64,000 bases of DNA from Dendrobates tinctorius (lineage: Eukaryota). The notes under the pieces are model-generated. The model made no database searches. It saw only the letters and a program-made list of their open reading frames with translations, and had not been told where the DNA came from. The stretch covers positions 60,326,001 through 60,390,000 of the forward strand of contig NW_027361687.1 in the NCBI RefSeq assembly GCF_039654945.1. Direction: 5' to 3'. Every line of letters begins with the position of its first letter. The stretch's first letter is position 1. Position numbers and translations under genes: made by a program. Of this stretch, positions 3,272 to 14,935 are shown piece by piece.

Positions 3272-4294
3272 TGTGGCACCCCCAGGAGTATGGCCGCCAC
3301 AGTGGCTTTGCCTTCTTCCAGGGAGGGTAATGCCAGGCTTGGATGCAAGGAAGGGTCTCTCCAGCAGTTTATCTATGCATGCAACACAGTTCCACTCCAG
3401 GCCAGCAGGGGGGACTCTGAACCGGAATTAAGGGGAGGAGTGCTCTCTGAGGGCCAAGAGGAAGGAGTGGTTAGTTAGTCTGCGGAGGGTGAAGTGTGCA
3501 GACGTGGGGAAGAAGCGCAGAGATCGAGCGGAGAAGAAAGGCTCATCTCCAGTGAGAGCGCATGAACTGGACCCTGGTCTCCACGGTGGTATGGATACTA
3601 ATGGTCCTGCAACAGACACCAGAGGAGTAGGAGGCTGTAAATGCACTACTCCCATCTAAGACTTGAGAGCACGACAGCAACATTAATAGTAAGTCGGGAC
3701 TTAGGAGAAAGGAGTCCCCGAAACAGGCTATAGCTGTCTGCCGTACAAGTAGAGTTCTTGGGAACATCTGTCAGGAGGAACTTCAGTGTCACTCGGTACT
3801 GGAGACCCCTCAAATAAGCGCTAGGAAGGAGACTGCACAGCCCATCTGCTGAGAGAGAATCCCTGAGTTGCTTCCAGGCTAGCCTGCTCCGGTACCATCT
3901 GTAATCAGGACCCTGGACTGCAGTTGTCAAGTAAAGGTACAGAAACTGCACCCCGCTGTGTCTTTGTCTGCTTTCTACCTTACCGGCAGCGCTACATCCC
4001 CGTGCCAACCACATCTACACTGCCCTGGGACTACAGCTTCACCTGTGGGGAACTTTTACATCTTTGCTGCACCATACTATCAGTCCCAGCGGATCTGCAT
4101 GCAGCGTCGGCGTAACACCTCCCTTGCCGAACACCACAGGTGGCATCACAAACTATTCATTTAATCCTTCACATTCCAGCATTACAATTCCCCTTTTATT
4201 TGGGCGCCCAGGGCCACGGACCGGGTCACCGCTGCTGTGACATTTCCTTCTGAGAGACCGGCCCGGTACCCCACAGCCCTGGGAGGGCGACCCA
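3272..4294 (+). repeat. Gypsy 5' LTR
   Basis: TGTGGCAC...GGGCGACCCA; direct repeat of 15412-16428 (roughly 95% identical by eye). Confidence 0.92.
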
Positions 4295-5691: not shown

Positions 5692-6422
5692 GTGGTGATT
5701 GACGGCATCCCCATGAACGCTTTGATGGACACTGGCTCCCAGGTGACCACCATGCCGTACATTCTTTACAAGAGGTACTGGGCTGACTCTGAACTCACTC
5801 ATGGCCCAACTGATGATCTGACAGTAGTTGCCAGTAATGGCCAGTCTTTACCCCAAGTAGGATGTAAAGAAATTACTGTTAAAGTGGGTCGGGTAGAGCT
5901 AAAATCTCAAGGTCTGATGTGGATATTGATCGACGTGAATGTAATCCCATGATGACTCTTGGTACCAATGTAATTGAAAACTGTCTTTCCGAGGTTATTG
6001 TCTTGTTGCAACAGGTGGCTGAGACTGCTGGTTCCAGTGAACAATGAGACCTGCAGAAGGAGATCAGAGCCCTGATGCAAAGACAACAGGTAGAAATCTC
6101 TGGCGGAGAAATTAGCAGTGTCAGAGTGAGTGATGCTTTCCCCATTGCAATACCCCCCAGATGTGAAATGTTGATTTGGTGTCGGGCAGCTATGGGTCTC
6201 AGAGGAAAAGACTACCAGGCATTGGTAGAGCCAGTATACCCTGATAGCAGGCCCACTGTCCTGACAGCCAGAGGGGTGGTTGATGTACGTAAAGGGAGAG
6301 TACCTGTACACCTCTTGAATTGTGGGGAGGAGGAGGCCACAATACCTCGGTCTGCCACAGTTGCTAAGCTGCTTACTGTTAATAACAATTCATTGCAGGC
6401 AGCAGAGCCCTTGGTCTCAGCC
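5692..6422 (+). pseudogene. Gypsy aspartic protease and PR-RT spacer, 5' of the BEL insertion
   Basis: NALMDTGSQVTTM motif; in frame with DQVEGNG at 12468 after removing the BEL element and one TSD. Confidence 0.82.
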
Positions 6423-6836
6423 TATTCTGACTCATAGATATGTAGAACGTATGGTGCCTGGATAGACCTCTCTTTCTGGGCCCCTTCCGTATCGACCTGT
6501 ACTCACGTTCATACCGATTAATCAGACAGCTTAACTCAGCCACGATCTCATGTAAGAAGACTCCAAGAAAAGAGGGATGCTTTAACTGAAATTCTTGTAT
6601 TATGATGAAAGCAGCAGGTAAAAAGGAATATTCTTCAGAGGACATGTAGCAGGATGCATACAGATGGAGGGACGATCACAAAATGGAGAATGAAGGAGGG
6701 AACAAACATACATCACAGGACTACAGGGAGAGAGTTGGAACAAAATACAGGGAAAGGCAAACTTCTGCCTAGCAACAGATGATGCAACACAAACAATGCA
6801 AATATTAAATGATTTCCCAAGTCGTGGGACATGACA
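6423..6836 (-). repeat. BEL/Pao 3' LTR (TG...TA)
   Basis: Direct repeat of 12050-12462; preceded on the sense strand by purine tract GACGGGGAG. Confidence 0.92.
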
Positions 6837-7161
6837 CTCCCCGTCTGAAATCCTTGGATTTTATGATGTCCGTAATTCTTCGAAGTCGTTCGAACCTAAA
6901 AAACAAGAGAAAAGAGAAAAACATGTATGCAATAATAAACATCAAACATTTTTAAAGTCCAACTCATTGTTGTTGACCCGTAGATCACACCGGAAGATAA
7001 GTCCAAGACTATAAACCCATCTTCGGATTGGGGAAGCCGGAAACATGCCAACTCTTCCACCAACCCAGCAATCCAATGGAAAATGTCAATGTTCAATAAA
7101 AAACTGGGGAATGAGGAGGAATGCTCCCCGCCGTGAGCAACGTCCAGGAGCAATGTTCAGT

Positions 7162-9438
7162 TCATGTGACGTCCTCCTTTGGCAGTAGCAGCACGAGATC
7201 GGTGACCGGACGTAGGAAGGTTCGGGTAGAGCTCCCTTTTGTCGCCTTAACTTCTGTCTTACGAGTCTTTCCGTCCTCGCTGGGCATGACCTTGGTGATA
7301 AGACCCATTGGCCAGTCGTTACGATGAGCCTCTTTGTCTTTTAAGAGAACAAGGTCTCCTTCTTGGAGATTGGGACTGGGTGCCTGCCATTTGTGACGGT
7401 TTTGAAGCAGGTGCAAGTATTCGGTCTTCCAACGGTGCCAAAACACGTTGGCTATGTGTTGTACTTGCTTCCACTGACGTTTGTAAATGTCCTTGTTATC
7501 GAAATTCCTGGGAGGAACTGTAGCAGCTCCAATCTTCTGTGTAAGAAGTGTAGCTGGGGTAAGAATCATTGGAGAATAACAACGTGGGACTTGGAGTTGC
7601 TCTAAGAACTTCAAGGACTTCTTCCATGTCTCCCACCTTTGCTGTTTCTGAGTCGGAAGCGGGGTGTCCCAATCAGTGTTCTCGGCAGTGAGCTGTCTTA
7701 ACAGTATCTTGCCTTGAATAGTGATGGATGCTACAAACCCGAGAGGATCGTAGATGCTGTTTACGACAGATAGGACTCCTCGTTTGGTAAAGGGTTTGTC
7801 ACAGGGCGACACTTGGAAGGTGAAGGTGTCCTGTTTGATATCCCACAGTAGACCAAGCCTGCGCTGTGTGGGAGGAACATCAGAACCTAGGTTGAGGTCC
7901 TTTAGGTTCATGGCATGGTCCTCAGATGGAAACGCGCTCATTACTTCTTGACTGTTAGAGATGATCTTGTGGAGTCTGAGGTTTGATGTAGATAGCATTT
8001 CCTGTGTCCTGGAGAGTAGGTCAATTGCCTCTTCACTTGTGGGCAAGGACTTGACCCCGTCGTCTACGTAGAAGTTCTTCTCTACGAATTGACGAGCATC
8101 GGATCCATACTCTCTCTCACCTTCCTGGGCTGTCCGTCTCAGTCCGTAGATCGCCACAGCAGGTGAAGGACTGTTGCCGAAGACATGGACCTTCATCCGG
8201 TAGTCTATGACTTGATAGTTGACATTGTTGTCTTTGTGCCATAGGAACCTAAGATAGTTTCTGCCGTCTTCCTTCATGATGAAGCAATGAAACATCTGCT
8301 GGATGTCGGCCATTATAGCAACAGGTTCTTGTCTGAAGCAGATCAATACTCCAAGGAGACTGTTGTTCAGGTTGGGTCCAGTTAGTAGCAGGTTGTTGAG
8401 AGAGAGGCCTTCATACTGAGCACTGGAGTCAAACACCACTCTGATCTGGTTAGGCTTGCGAGGATGATAGACACCAAAGGATGGAAGGTACCAACATTCT
8501 TCTCCTTCCTTCAGTGGTGGCGCAGGTTCAGCATGATCTTTGTCAAAGATGTTCTGCATAAAGTCAATGAAATGCTTCTCCATTTCTGGTTTCCTCTTTA
8601 GGGTACGTTTTAAGGCTGAGAACCTTGCAGTTGCTTGCTGCAGGTTGTTTGGCAACCTCGCTCTTGGGAAACTAAAGGGTAAAGGAGCTACCCAACTGTT
8701 GGAGTCATCTTGAACAAATTCTTTGTCCATAACCTTTATGAATACTTTATCTTCCCTTGTGGGTGCTAGCTTGTTGTCTTCACTTGTGGAATCGAACACT
8801 GTTGACCCGAGGTTTTCGTCCCAGGGCTGGAGCATGTTCATGTTGTTGAAGGATTCCTGTTGCCTCTTGGTGTTGCTCACTTTCTCTTTCACCCAGTAAT
8901 GATGTGGGCATGGCTGAAAATGAGTGCTGCGACCATTTGGCAAGATGTGTGTTTTGTAAGAGGAGATGTTATTAGGTCTCTTCATCTTGTGTATGCAAAC
9001 ATCGCCTATAATTACCCAGCCTAGATCAAAGCGTTGGGCAAATGGTGCGTCGTGTGGTCCGTTAAATTGCTGACGTACCTTGTGCAGCCGGGGAATGTCT
9101 CTGCCAAGCAGAATCAGGATATCTGCGCTGTTGTTGAGGGCTGGTATCTTGTTTGCTATCCCCTTGAGATGTGGGTGATGAAGAGCAGCCTCTGGCGTTG
9201 GGATCTCTTCTCGATTGGAAGGAATCTGGTTGCACTCGACAAGTGTGGGTAAGGGTATCTCCACGGTGTTGTCGAGGGATGTCGCTATAAGACCACTGGC
9301 CCTTCTCCCAGAGACCTCTGTAACACCGCTGCAGGTACCTAAGGTGTAAGGGTAACCATTTCCCTTTAAGTTAAACATATCAAAGAGTTCTTTCCTTGCA
9401 AGTGACCGGTTGCTCTGATCATCCAAGAGGATGTACAC
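7162..9438 (-). pseudogene. BEL/Pao pol: protease-RT-partial RNase H fused in frame to the post-integrase C-terminal region
   Basis: ILLDDQSNRS; WYLP..GVYHPRKP..IRVVFDSSA; ADIQQMF; FGNSPSP; FYVDD; YDPLGF; then VPRCYSP|MILTPATLLTQK and W..VQ..ANVFWHRWKTEYL. Confidence 0.88.
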
Positions 9439-9439
9439 C

Positions 9440-11751
9440 TTCGCGGCTTTCTCTGGGTGACCGTTGGGATATGTTCACCAGGCAAATCTTCGCACAGGAC
9501 TTGTCCCAGAGACCTTCTCCGCAGACTTCTGTGCATGAAGAAGATATTGTGGTATGACTTGCAGTTTGAGCTGCGTCCTCCCCGCCATGGCTCGTGGTGG
9601 GGGAAGGAGTACGTGTAGAGTTAGGACGGTATGGGTGGAGTGCTTGTACGTGATCCTCACTGTCACACTCCATACACTTAATTGTAGTTTTACAGTCTTT
9701 AGCAAGGTGTTCAGTAGAAGCACAACATCTGTAGCATACCCCGAACTTCTTTAGAAGTTCCTTGCGTTCTTGGAGCGGTTTCTTCCTGAAGCCGATGCAC
9801 TATTTTAAGGGATGTGGCTTCTTGTGGATGGGACACTCACGATTTGGGTTCTCTATCTTTTCACCCTTGTTGCTCTTGCCTGGGGCTGATGTTGGTAAGG
9901 GAAGAATATCCGTCTTCTTCACCGAAACTGGACTCCTGCGGTTTCTGTCATTCGAGCGTGTGCTCACGTATTTAGAGGGAGGTGAAGCTGGGCCACTGGA
10001 TTCTCCGTAGGAAAAGCTTGGGTCGTTCTTACGCTCTGCAATGTCTTTTATAAACTCACAGAAGTAGGAGAATGCAGGAAATGACACTTGATGGTTTTTC
10101 TTGTATTTTGACTCTATTGCAGTCCACTTCTCTTGTACATTGTATGGTAGCTTGGAGATAATGGGGTTTACTCCACGAGCAGTGTCCAGGTAGCTAAGGC
10201 CAGGTAGGTGGGTGTCTGCCTTGGCCAGCTGGAGCTCTAACAGCAGGTCACTGAGCTCTAGGAACTTTGAACTGTCCTTGCTGGATATCTTTGGAAAACT
10301 CTGTAGTCGCTTGAACAGTGCATCCTCTATGGCTTCTGGACTGCCAAAGTTTCTCTCTAGTCTTTCCCATGCAGCCATGAGACCAGCCGTTGGATTACTG
10401 ATATGTACAGACCTGAGTCTCTTGACACGCTCTGTGGATTGTGGTCCTAACCATCTGATCAGCAGGTCCAGCTCTTCCGCAGCAGTGATACCGAGGTCAC
10501 CAGTTACGGTTCTAAAGGCACTTTTCCAACCTCTGTAATTTTCAGGTTGGTCGTCGAACCTTGTGAGACCGGTTTTAGTAAGTTCACGGCGAATCATGTA
10601 CCTTGCGAAGTCGGACATGTCTGTTCTTTCTGACTTAGGATGCACAATTGTAGGCTGAGCGGTGTTGTACATAGAGGTGGAGACGTCTTGGCCTTGAAAC
10701 ATGGGGAAGTATGGAGTGGCATATGCATTTAGTCCAGCAACTGGTTTGGTGGGTATAGTTTCTGCTACATGTGGAGGTGGCACTGTGTGGTTGTCGAGGG
10801 TATAATGACCTTGAATGCAGGATTCTGTAAGTGGATCGGCATCCTGGTGCTCTAGAGAAGCGTCAACACCATCAAGAGTGTTAGTGATGATCTGCGGTTC
10901 GCCATCTTGGCTTAGCACGTAGTCTCTTGTGCGTTCAATAGGGTCTTCTGCCTCCATTTCACACAAACTGACGCTGTCTCTTTGACTCCCACTGACAGCC
11001 TGCTCGAGTACCTTTAATTCTGCCATGGCTGTTGCATGCTCACATTCCTTCTCTAGAGCTTCCTTTTCCGCTTTCACGCGTGCCGCTTCTGCATCCATTT
11101 CTGCTCTATTTTGTGCAGCAGCTGCATCCATTTCTGCTCTCTTTTGTGCAACAGCTGCGTCCATTTCTGCTCTCTTTTGTGCAAAGGCAGCTTGTACCTT
11201 AGTAGTTTCAGCCTTAGCACGTGCTCTTATAAGCTGCTCAGTAAGAGTAGAATATATTGATGAACTTGACCTAGATGAACGTTTTGAGTGCTTACACGAT
11301 TTGGATGAGCGAGTTGATGCATCTGGTGTTCGTGCGATTCTAGCCTCTATCCTGGCTTTAATGTCACGTACAGTGCAGTCTCTTTCAGAATTAAGCTGCT
11401 GGAAACCTTGCAATTCATTTAAAGTCTCTGGGAGATTCAGTTTCTTCAGGAGAATAATGTATTGGTCACTCTTCTCCATGTACATTTGGTATGCTGTGCA
11501 TAATTGTTCTAGGACTCCCTCTGGTGGTAACTCATGAGAAGCAGGCCTTGATGTAGTGTCTATAGCACTTTCTTCCATACTGAAGACACATCACTATATA
11601 ATTCACATTTTGCAGTCTCTAAGTTCTCCATGACTTTCCATGTGGGTTTGACTGTACGTTTTCCCCTTTCGCTAGATGGTGGATGGGGGTCTGGGTCTCT
11701 TTCCTGTGCTTGTAAGTCTGGTAGGGACATTGTATTCCTTGCTTCAGACAT
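9440..11751 (-). pseudogene. BEL/Pao gag region (coiled coil, DUF1759-like capsid, Cys-His boxes), with frameshifts and a stop
   Basis: 592-aa ORF with FDDQPENYRGWK, LIRWLGPQS, AWERLERNFG, LPYNVQEKW, CPIHKKPH; further CECDSEDH..ALH-like box near 9660. Confidence 0.8.
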
Positions 11752-12014
11752 GATTAGATTGCAGGCAGGAAGATTTGATGATGGGGGTTATACTTCCCAC
11801 TGTTCAGCAACAGGAAATACACAGAGACTCTGCACAGAGTTGATACTTTGTATCTAATGCTGGAGCAGCTGCAGGGTCCTGTGTAATGATGGGAGTTATA
11901 TTCCTCTCTGTTCAGCTGCAGCGTGTGGCTTCTATGCACGCTGGGTTCTGGCTGGAACTGGGTTAGTCTATCTGGGAAATGTCCTTTTCCACTGAGATTT
12001 AGCACAGACCTTGA

Positions 12015-12049
12015 GTTACTGTCTCTGAAGGCAGGTTATTCCTTTTTAC
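12015..12049 (-). promoter_or_regulatory. Putative self-priming PBS of the BEL/Pao element (complementary to its own LTR, not to a tRNA)
   Basis: Sense GTAAAAAGGAATA (12049-12037) is the exact reverse complement of LTR-sense TATTCCTTTTTAC (12257-12245); further pairing between 12030-12015 and 12260-12277; no TGG-type PBS. Confidence 0.65.
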
Positions 12050-12462
12050 TATTCTGACTCATGGATATGTAGAACGTATGGTGCCTGGATAGACCTCTCT
12101 TTCTGGGCCCCTTCCGTATCGACCTGTACTCACGTTCATACCGATTAATCAGACAGCTTAACTCAGCCACGATCTCATGTAAGAAGACTCCAGGAAAAGA
12201 GGGATGCTTTAACTGAAATTCTTGTATTATGATGAAAGCAGCAGGTAAAAAGGAATATTCTTCAGAGGACATGTAACAGGATGCATACAGATGGAGGGAC
12301 GATCACAAAATGGAGAATGAAGGAGGGAACAAACATACATCACAGGACTACAGGGAGAGAGTTGGAACAAAATACAGGGAAAGGAAAACTTCTGCCTAGC
12401 AACAGAGATGCAACACAAACAATGCAAATATTAAATGATTTCCCAAGTCGTGGGACATGACA
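12050..12462 (-). repeat. BEL/Pao 5' LTR (TG...TA)
   Basis: Sense strand TGTCATGTCC...GAGTCAGAATA. Confidence 0.92.
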
Positions 12463-12467
12463 CAGCC

Positions 12468-14935
12468 GATCAGGTGGAGGGCAATGGCTCTGTGAAACAG
12501 CTGGAGAAGTGGTGCCAGCAACTGCAGGTGGGGACTGACTCTACACCTTCATACCAAAAGAATGGAGTTTACAGAGTGACACAAGAGTATGAGCGGGTAT
12601 TCAGTAAACACCCACTAGATTTTGGGCAGGCAAATTGGGTTCAACATCATATCCCCACTGGAGATCATTCACCCATTAAAGAAAGGTACCGACCTATACC
12701 CCCAACATAATACCAATGTGCTAAGAGTATGGTGAGAGAGATGAAGGAAGCTGGGGTTATCAGACAGTTGTAGCCCCTGGGCAGCTCCCATAGTTTTTGT
12801 AAAGAAAAAGGATGGTACCATGAGAATGTGTGTTGATTACAGGAAAATTAACAGCATTACACATAAAGATGCCTACCCATTACCTAGAATTGAAGAGTCA
12901 TTAGCTGCACTTAAAACTGCTAACTACTTTTCCACCTTGGATCTCACTAGCGGGTATTGGCAGGTTCCCGTGGCAGAGACAGACAAGGAGAAAACAGCAT
13001 TTACCACTCCAATGGGTCTCTGTGAGTTCAACTATATGCCATTCTGGCTCTGCACCGCTCCAGGAACATTTCAACGGCTGATGGAGTGCTGCCTGGAACA
13101 CATGAACTTTGAGACCGTCCTGTTGTACCTTGATGATGTAATTGTTTTCTCCAAGACGTATGAGGACCATCTGGAGCACCTGGCTGAGGTGTTTGAAGCA
13201 TTGTCCAACTTTGGCCTGAAGGTGAAGCCTTCCAAATGCCACCTCCTGAAGCCCAAGGTACAGTACCTCGGTCATGTGGTGAGTGCAGAAGGTGTGGCAC
13301 CAGATCCGGACAAAGTCACAGTCATCCGGGACTGGCCGAAGCCCAGCAACCTCCATGAAGTACGCCAATTCCTTGGACTGGTAGGCTACTACCGCAGATT
13401 CATCAAAGGCTTTACGGAAATAGCCACCCCTATGCAAAATCTTCTGGTGGAGCAGACTAAGACGACTAAACAGAAAAATTCCACCTTTGAATGGACTGAG
13501 GAGTTGGGGAGATCCTTCACTCGACTGAAGATGGCTCTCACAGGTGATGAAATTCTGGCCTACCCAGATTATGACAAACCATTTCTGTTGTACACTAATG
13601 CCAGCAACGTGGGACGTGGAGCAGTACTGTCACAGGTACAGAATGGAAAAGAAAGAGTGATCTCCTACGCCAGCAGGAAGCTGTGTCCCACTGAAAGAAA
13701 CCCTGACAACTACAGTTCCTTCAAGCTGGAGTTCCTTGCCATAGTCTGGGCTGTGACTGAAAGATTCAAGCATTAGCTAGCTTCAGCTAAGTTTACCAGC
13801 TTCACGGACAACAACCCGTTGACCGACTAGGAAACTGCAAAACTAGGTGCACTGGAGCAGCGGTGGATGGCTCGGCTGTCTACCTATGAATTTACCATCA
13901 AGTACCGAGCAGGGCACAAGAATGCCAATGATGATGCACGGTCTAGAATGCCTAATCTGCCAGATGCAGGAGAAGACCCTGAGGCTCTTGAAGAAATAGA
14001 GCTACCTCCCTTCCACCGGCCACTTGCGGCCCAACGTGCTCAAGGAGTGAGAAACAGACGGTCTGGCTTGTAGGAGGTCACCCTGAAGCAATTGCCCCAT
14101 CATGACTGGGCAGAAAGGCAAGATAGTGACCCTGCAGTCCACCTGGTGAAGGAGCTACTGTCACAAGCTGACTCACGTGCAGAGTCGGATGCTCCTGAAG
14201 AAACCCAGCAGTTGTGGAAGGAATGAGGCTGACTGTTCATCTATGAAGAAAAGCTGTGTCGGAGGAGTATCAAAGTATCAATGCCTGGACTCATGAGCTG
14301 GTCTGGCAGGTGATAGTCCCAAAGAGAGAGGCCTCAATGGTCTTGGAAGTATACCACAATGGAGCTGGACACTTCGGATGGAAAAAGTTGGAGGCCTTGT
14401 TCCGGGAGAGATTCTACTCTGCTGGTATGAGGAAAGCCATTGAAAAGTGGTGCCGGGAGTGTGGACAATGTAACCTGTGCAGAAAGGATCGAAACAGCCA
14501 GAGAGCTCCTCTGCAGCCAATAGTAACCAAACAGCCAATTGAGTTGGTCGCTCTGGACCATGTGAAGCTGGTCCCAAGCCGGTCTGGCTACATCTATGCT
14601 CTTACCATCGTGGACCACTACTCCAGATTCCTGGTAGCTGTGCCTGTCAAAGATCAAACAGCCAGGACAGCAGCCAGAGCATTCCAACAGCACTTTTGCA
14701 GACCACATGGTTACCCTGAAAGAGTACTTACAGATCAAGGTCCAGCTTTTGAAGCAGAAGTATTCCAGGAATTCTGTAACTTGTATGGTTGCAAGAAGAT
14801 CCGGACAACCCCGTTCCATCCACAGACCAATGGCATGTGTGAGAAGATGAACCAGGTAGTGATTGACCTACTGAAGACATTGCCTTTGGAGGAGAGAAAT
14901 CTGTGGCCAGAAAAGTTGCCAGATCTAGTAGACGT
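12468..14935 (+). pseudogene. Gypsy pol: RT, RNase H and integrase core (stops and frameshifts; integrase C-terminus lost)
   Basis: RMCVDYRKIN, LDLTSGYWQ, YLDDVIV, QFLGLVGYYRRFI, YSSFKLEFLAIVWA, GHFG..CRECGQC, LVALDH, TDQGPAFE, PQTNGMCEKMN. Confidence 0.92.

Follow-up and report, generated by a model that had tools for sequence, protein, structure and literature searches.

How does a long terminal repeat (LTR) retrotransposon begin reverse transcription when its 5' LTR is not followed by a binding site for a transfer RNA (tRNA) primer? This question is raised by a BEL/Pao element on the minus strand of a 64,000-nucleotide (64-kb) stretch of the frog Dendrobates tinctorius (NCBI RefSeq assembly GCF_039654945.1, contig NW_027361687.1, positions 60,326,001 to 60,390,000), hereafter called the window, in which the outer limits of the element lie at 12462 and 6423. 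BEL/Pao is the least studied LTR superfamily, and its members have been described with tRNA primer sites. Sequence comparison, predicted folding and analogy together suggest that minus-strand DNA synthesis of the window element is most likely primed by the element's own RNA, in a manner resembling that of the fission-yeast retrotransposon Tf1.

The evidence starts at the boundary between the 5' LTR and the leader, and the window features given here and below are on the minus strand. The 5' LTR (12050..12462; 413 nt, TGTCATG...CAGAATA) forms a direct repeat with the 3' LTR (6423..6836; 414 nt), to which it is ~99% identical, and the two are flanked by matching copies of the target-site duplication GGCTG, upstream at 12463..12467 and downstream at 6418..6422. 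Since 5-bp target duplications are also unambiguous in relatives of the element (AAAGC in Bufo, CCTAA in Ascaphus and AATTA in Mytilus), the window LTR ends with ...CAGAATA and G12049 is the first base after it. The leader begins with GTAAAAAGGAATAACC, and a TGG-type primer-binding site (PBS) is absent after the LTR. Flush with the LTR end lies the proposed PBS GTAAAAAGGAATA (12037..12049), a perfect 13-nt reverse complement of the proposed self-primer core TATTCCTTTTTAC at LTR positions 206-218 (12245..12257), which occurs with the same sequence in the 3' LTR (6618..6630). Beyond an internal loop of 2/6 nt the pairing continues between the leader strand CTTCAGAGACAGTAAC (12015..12030) and the primer-strand extension GTTACaTGTcCTCTGAAG (12260..12277) through 8, 3 and 5 bp interrupted by two one-base bulges, which brings the total to 29 bp. 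The predicted cut that would release the primer falls between 12245 and 12244, after C12245 (...UUUUUAC).

A sequence-only reading of the window had already described the missing TGG-type PBS, the flush 13-nt complement with its second copy and the 29-bp total; all of these are borne out by the sequence, its coordinates for the element, the complement and the extension are correct throughout, and the LTR limits have been refined to 12462-12050 and 6836-6423. With 13 nt at offset 0, the window element lies within the published definition of a predicted self-primer, by which a stretch starting 0-5 nt after the 5' LTR is complementary to that LTR over at least 10 bp (PMC6317226). The inspection for PBSs had a positive control in a retrovirus-like element nested in the D. 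tinctorius locus L001, where a canonical TGGCGCCCGAACAGGGAC-type PBS was seen. The same locus holds a second copy of the window family (~97% nucleotide identity to the window copy), in which both leader substitutions that fall inside the helices still pair, as G.U.

Such a helix is not expected by chance. As a control we determined, for 4000 other start positions inside the element, the Watson-Crick helix formed with the R/U5 part of the LTR; none of them reached 13 bp, the control maximum being 9, and the chance expectation for a 13-bp helix at a fixed start is ~1e-5. With up to one mismatch, the 13-mer occurs three times in the window, always within this element, versus 0.12 occurrences expected. 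Moreover, when the RNA 12285-12005 is folded to minimum energy, the LTR-leader duplex closes the structure, at pair probabilities of 0.73-1.0, and the extension alone has a predicted energy of -25.4 kcal/mol, a value matched by 0/500 shuffles and 0/288 natural control windows. A second inverted repeat, between U5 (12149-12165) and the leader (12012-12028), was dropped from the mechanism, its pairing not being conserved in relatives. The U5 side of this repeat is a motif resembling GTTA(A)GCTRTCTG that is kept in 11/12 of the elements compared below, across phyla, at 41-112 nt before the LTR end.

The sequence-only reading had named complementarity in diverged relatives as a check on self-priming, and we ran this check. 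Loci of ten relatives were obtained via their pol proteins and an eleventh relative is a further element within L001, so that with the window 12 elements were compared, which come from three frog families, fishes, a lamprey, a ray, a tick, a mussel, an oyster and a priapulid. Their LTR limits were set by self-comparison, target duplications and the conserved polypurine tract, and by eye for Oreochromis and Misgurnus. In all 12 the first base after the LTR opens a Watson-Crick helix with an LTR-internal motif that ends in ...TTTTAC or in TTTCAC, TCTTAC or CTTCAC, and a TGG-type PBS is absent in the 11 relatives as well. Hence, the complementarity is conserved in diverged relatives and, as detailed below, accompanied by compensatory changes.

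Long helices occur in five young elements, with LTRs 98.7-100% identical, and their sequence is different in each. Besides the 13 bp of the window element, they comprise 11 bp in Bufo (leader GTAAAAGAACG, LTR partner CGTTCTTTTAC; the LTRs of this Bufo gargarizans element are identical), 10 Watson-Crick bp in Ascaphus, or 12 bp with one G.U, 11 bp in the tick Ornithodoros turicata (leader GTAAAAAGACA, LTR partner TGTCTTTTTAC) and 11 bp in Mytilus trossulus (leader GTGAAGAGATT, LTR partner AATCTCTTCAC). At 4000 starts each, the control fraction for these five elements is 0 to 0.0005, and all five predicted folds close with the duplex at a pair probability near 1. The extension past the first helix is significant in the three frog elements (0/500 shuffles, 0/288 natural windows) and marginal, by the same separate test, in tick and mussel. 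Counted in Watson-Crick pairs at offset 0, four relatives reach 10-11, and the remaining seven fall below the published length of at least 10 nt. The helices of these seven measure 8 bp in Ostrea (with 6 more past a bulge), 7 bp in Hypanus, in the second D. tinctorius BEL/Pao element and in Priapulus, and 6 bp each in the lamprey, Oreochromis and Misgurnus; they involve the same place in the LTR, with individual control fractions of 0.002-0.07.

The pairing is maintained while the sequence changes. Among ten elements, both-sided compensatory changes with at least two types of Watson-Crick pair are found at helix positions 3 and 5-11, and covariation extends to the short helices, where GTGAAAA/TTTTCAC in Hypanus stands against GTGAAAC/GTTTCAC in the second D. 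tinctorius element. From oyster to frog, the leader keeps its first 6-8 nt (GTAAAAAG or GTRAAR), and beyond them it differs by lineage. In a pol tree, elements with long helices lie on both sides of the midpoint root, so that the arrangement is a trait of the clade and not of a frog family. This modifies the earlier proposal that self-priming evolved independently in this lineage: self-priming itself is supported, yet the trait is common to a broad BEL/Pao clade and may be either independent or ancestral in origin. The tick element (L007, 7300-14323) has a pol 60% identical to that of the frog element and groups in the tree with the frog and lamprey elements, apart from the mollusc and priapulid ones, a placement that could reflect horizontal transfer between vertebrates and ticks. 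A metagenome scan with CAGAATAGTAAAAAG gave 120 chance matches, 0 of them BEL/Pao by tblastn, and a scan of viral contigs with the pol alignment gave no further elements.

The position of the motif within the LTR bears on whether it could act as a primer. In the elements compared it sits 78-203 nt before the LTR end, and AATAAA, ATTAAA or AATACA follows 12-101 nt downstream of it in 9/10 elements examined; in the window element the candidate poly(A) signal is the variant AATACA (12223..12228), 16 nt downstream of the predicted cut. Since a poly(A) signal lies downstream of the motif, the motif is probably in R. The 5' part of R would be expected there, and some of R would remain past the predicted cut to serve in the first strand transfer. 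For the second D. tinctorius element (L001:22745 onward), whose leader is GTGAAACAGCGG, the distance from the 7-bp partner GTTTCAC is 122 nt to the LTR end and 24 nt to an AATAAA downstream of it. TATA-like boxes were inconsistent between elements, and around the motif the LTRs have diverged too far for an alignment.

Because the geometry of the pairing is that of Tf1, we propose a Tf1-like order of steps. Transcription would start in the 5' LTR upstream of 12277, bringing the segment 12277-12245 near the 5' end of R. According to the sequence and the predicted fold, this segment can fold back across ~195 nt of R-U5 onto the leader, where it would form another 16 pairs in addition to the perfect 13-bp helix, whose last pair C12245:G12049 abuts the last U5 base. 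By analogy with Tf1, a reverse transcriptase supplied in trans would then cut with its RNase H after ...UUUUUAC. The new 3' end would be extended through U5 and R up to the cut, and the resulting strong-stop DNA would be transferred to the 3' R, which would be available because the poly(A) signal follows the motif. Finally, plus-strand synthesis would copy the attached primer into the PBS, such that the PBS is re-templated from the LTR motif in each cycle; this would account for the perfectly matched pairs that are specific to each lineage.

Several observations weigh against this mechanism. Seven of the 12 elements have helices of only 6-8 bp, shorter than the 11 of Tf1, so that the mechanism may fail across the whole clade or a short helix may need other contacts. 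If, as in Tf1, the RNA had to supply the primer from its extreme 5' end, a significant extension reaching up to 45 nt upstream would fit less simply. The contigs of public runs, whose type is uncertain, pass straight through the LTR and mark no RNA start, end, cut or strong-stop complementary DNA; on 6480-12475 they run through the 3' internal part, the whole LTR and the leader, their strand is not given either, and their joint 12276->6650 arises because the two LTRs are collapsed into one. Finally, the search with ARAGORN that gave no tRNA genes covered only the window and the 11 loci, and a host primer is countered indirectly, in that the leaders differ after 6-8 nt, each of them still matching the LTR of its element. 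A broader reading holds that an old BEL/Pao clade including vertebrates, ticks, molluscs and priapulids self-primes with a cut directly after a conserved ...UUUUAC in R and a primer taken from a duplex of 30-45 bp, which would make self-priming a trait of all three LTR superfamilies and perhaps an ancestral one instead of a peculiarity of Tf1/sushi; towards this reading we lean only slightly.

The duplex might also be real and selected for another role, such as packaging, dimerisation, translation control or masking of the PBS, while a host RNA, either a tRNA fragment or another small RNA, primes at the conserved and purine-rich GTAAAA(A)G start of the leader. This would agree with the conservation of the first 6-8 leader nt from oyster to frog, with the seven elements whose self-complement spans just 6-8 bp and with the tRNA PBS of described BEL/Pao elements such as Achilles (PMC4580426). 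However, past position 6-8 the leaders are lineage-specific and each is matched by its own LTR, which limits a single conserved host RNA to ~7 nt of pairing across all elements; also, no TGG follows the LTR, and the base next to U5 is always the first of the helix, a geometry that fits a primer and not a packaging stem. We thus regard priming by a host RNA as unlikely.

Considerably less probable still is a role in splicing, in which GTRARR at the leader start would serve as a 5' splice site, ...UUACC(UG) in the LTR would act on that site as a decoy or regulator akin to U1, and the pairing would govern splicing instead of priming. What speaks for it is that GTAAGA, GTGAAG and GTAAAA resemble what we take to be the donor consensus GURAGU, and that the LTR motif UUUUACCUG (12241-12250) resembles what we assume to be the 5' end of U1 small nuclear RNA, ACUUACCUG. 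Yet the exon side CAGAATA is unlike a donor, a lineage-specific pairing of 11-13 bp, and of up to ~30 bp, would be superfluous for a splice site, and neither an acceptor nor a second open reading frame (ORF) was identified. At the level of DNA, the leader does resemble an inverted copy of an LTR segment with small indels, as would result if the complementarity were a functionless product of chance or mutation, for instance of an inverted partial duplication of the LTR in the leader. We consider this origin almost negligible in view of the ~1e-5 expectation and of 0/4000 controls at 13 bp, and since 12 elements of several phyla carry such a pair at the same two positions, with differing sequences.

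Self-priming by the element's own RNA, which we prefer to these alternatives, has precedents in other superfamilies. It is established for Tf1, whose RNA pairs with the PBS through its first 11 nt and is cut by RNase H between nt 11 and 12 (PMC7175516, PMC5341516), and self-priming has likewise been described for Tj1 (PMC4600332). With Tf1, Tf2 and Tj1 of fission yeasts and with the Tf1/sushi group, which ranges from fungi to vertebrates, the BEL/Pao elements share the absence of a tRNA PBS and a segment of R complementary to the sequence flush with the U5 end; 11 nt pair in Tf1 and 10-13 bp in the five long-helix BEL/Pao elements, in the same geometry. The systems also differ. Tf1 belongs to Ty3/gypsy and the window element to BEL/Pao, and in the five BEL/Pao elements the duplex runs ~30-45 nt upstream of the predicted cut, so that the primer may be excised from a longer 5' arm instead of being the first 11 nt. 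Furthermore, the BEL/Pao elements keep a GTAAAA/UUUUAC core across phyla.

Self-priming has been predicted for Tf1/sushi elements, for the plant Tcn1 chromoviruses and for the TAR lineage of Ty1/copia (Houba, Osr-1), and thus in more than one superfamily, by the same in silico definition as applied here (PMC6317226). The Tcn1 and TAR elements are plant elements of other superfamilies, and that study did not contain a covariation analysis of the present kind. Within BEL/Pao, Achilles from the olive fruit fly has the same LTR-gag-pol layout, but its PBS consists of 18 nt complementary to the tRNA-Tyr 3' end right after the LTR (PMC4580426), whereas in the window element and its 11 relatives the corresponding sequence is complementary to the LTR of the same element. 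A tRNA PBS is a usual and not a defining trait of the described BEL/Pao members, and two broad BEL/Pao surveys are silent on primer sites. The sequence-only reading knew of no description of self-priming in BEL/Pao; in agreement with this, we found none in open-access full text, subscription papers being outside this scope, so that an earlier report is possible.

Altogether, the comparison suggests that a third major group of LTR elements can begin reverse transcription without a tRNA. If true, this would extend tRNA-independent priming to a third LTR superfamily and would bear on the proposal that the earliest LTR elements were hairpin-primed (PMC3601003). It would also account for the failure of tRNA-based PBS detectors on these abundant animal elements, which presumably would escape silencing by tRNA fragments aimed at tRNA primer sites. 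Young copies with identical LTRs, as in Bufo gargarizans, render the question directly testable by mapping of RNA ends.

By its Pfam domains and protein relatives, the window element is BEL/Pao (Belpaoviridae, Semotivirus), as the sequence-only reading had also concluded. Its pol ORF (7162..9438; 758 aa) encodes protease and reverse transcriptase followed by the integrase C-terminal DUF5641, and contains Pfam Peptidase_A17 (Pao-type, PF05380); the gag-like ORF (9800..11578; 592 aa) gives a weak DUF1759 match under the Pfam cut-off. The closest proteins are pol proteins of frog BEL/Pao elements, from Dendrobates tinctorius (87%), Bufo gargarizans (74%), Bombina (66%) and Ascaphus (63%), followed by those of fishes, a lamprey, a ray, ticks and molluscs. 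An assignment to the Tf1/sushi group of Ty3/gypsy was ruled out by the Pao-type Pfam domains and the BEL/Pao relatives. The LTR structure, TGT...ATA with a 5-bp duplication, fits the short inverted ends and the duplications of 4-6 bp that are a BEL/Pao trait.

Compared with intact relatives, in which rve and DUF5641 are both present, the window pol carries an in-frame deletion of ~573 aa near residues 622-629 that removes RNase H and the integrase core; in an alignment with P0002, the intact protein of Ascaphus, it spans residues 1-565 and then 1139-1273 of the latter. The deletion junction lies near 7550-7575, between two similar SP.(I/S)LT.A peptides. At L001:11017-15421, the family copy aligns across this region without a large gap. 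Since the two copies thus share a layout lacking RNase H and integrase, the family is non-autonomous and has been amplified with proteins supplied in trans, and because it spread without an RNase H and integrase of its own, its cis signals must work. The window element itself is young and non-autonomous, and must rely on mobilisation in trans.

The gag-like ORF contains three units of a 33-nt tandem repeat (11058..11183). The contigs of two public runs omit 60 nt in these repeats (11063->11124, with 15 other letters between), which indicates that the repeat number differs among copies. The polypurine tract AGACGGGGAG (6837..6846) directly precedes the 3' LTR, and a nearly identical tract is found in all relatives. 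In its form CAGACGGGGAG (6837-6847) it hardly varies between oyster and frog, and neither does the leader start GTAAAA; at both places RNase H would be expected to define a primer. The retrovirus-like element of L001 (2772-9496), with LTRs of 390 nt and the duplication ACCT, carries a PBS that we take to be of the tRNA-Lys3 type. It sits within the family copy's 5' LTR, inserted three bases past the predicted primer cut site.
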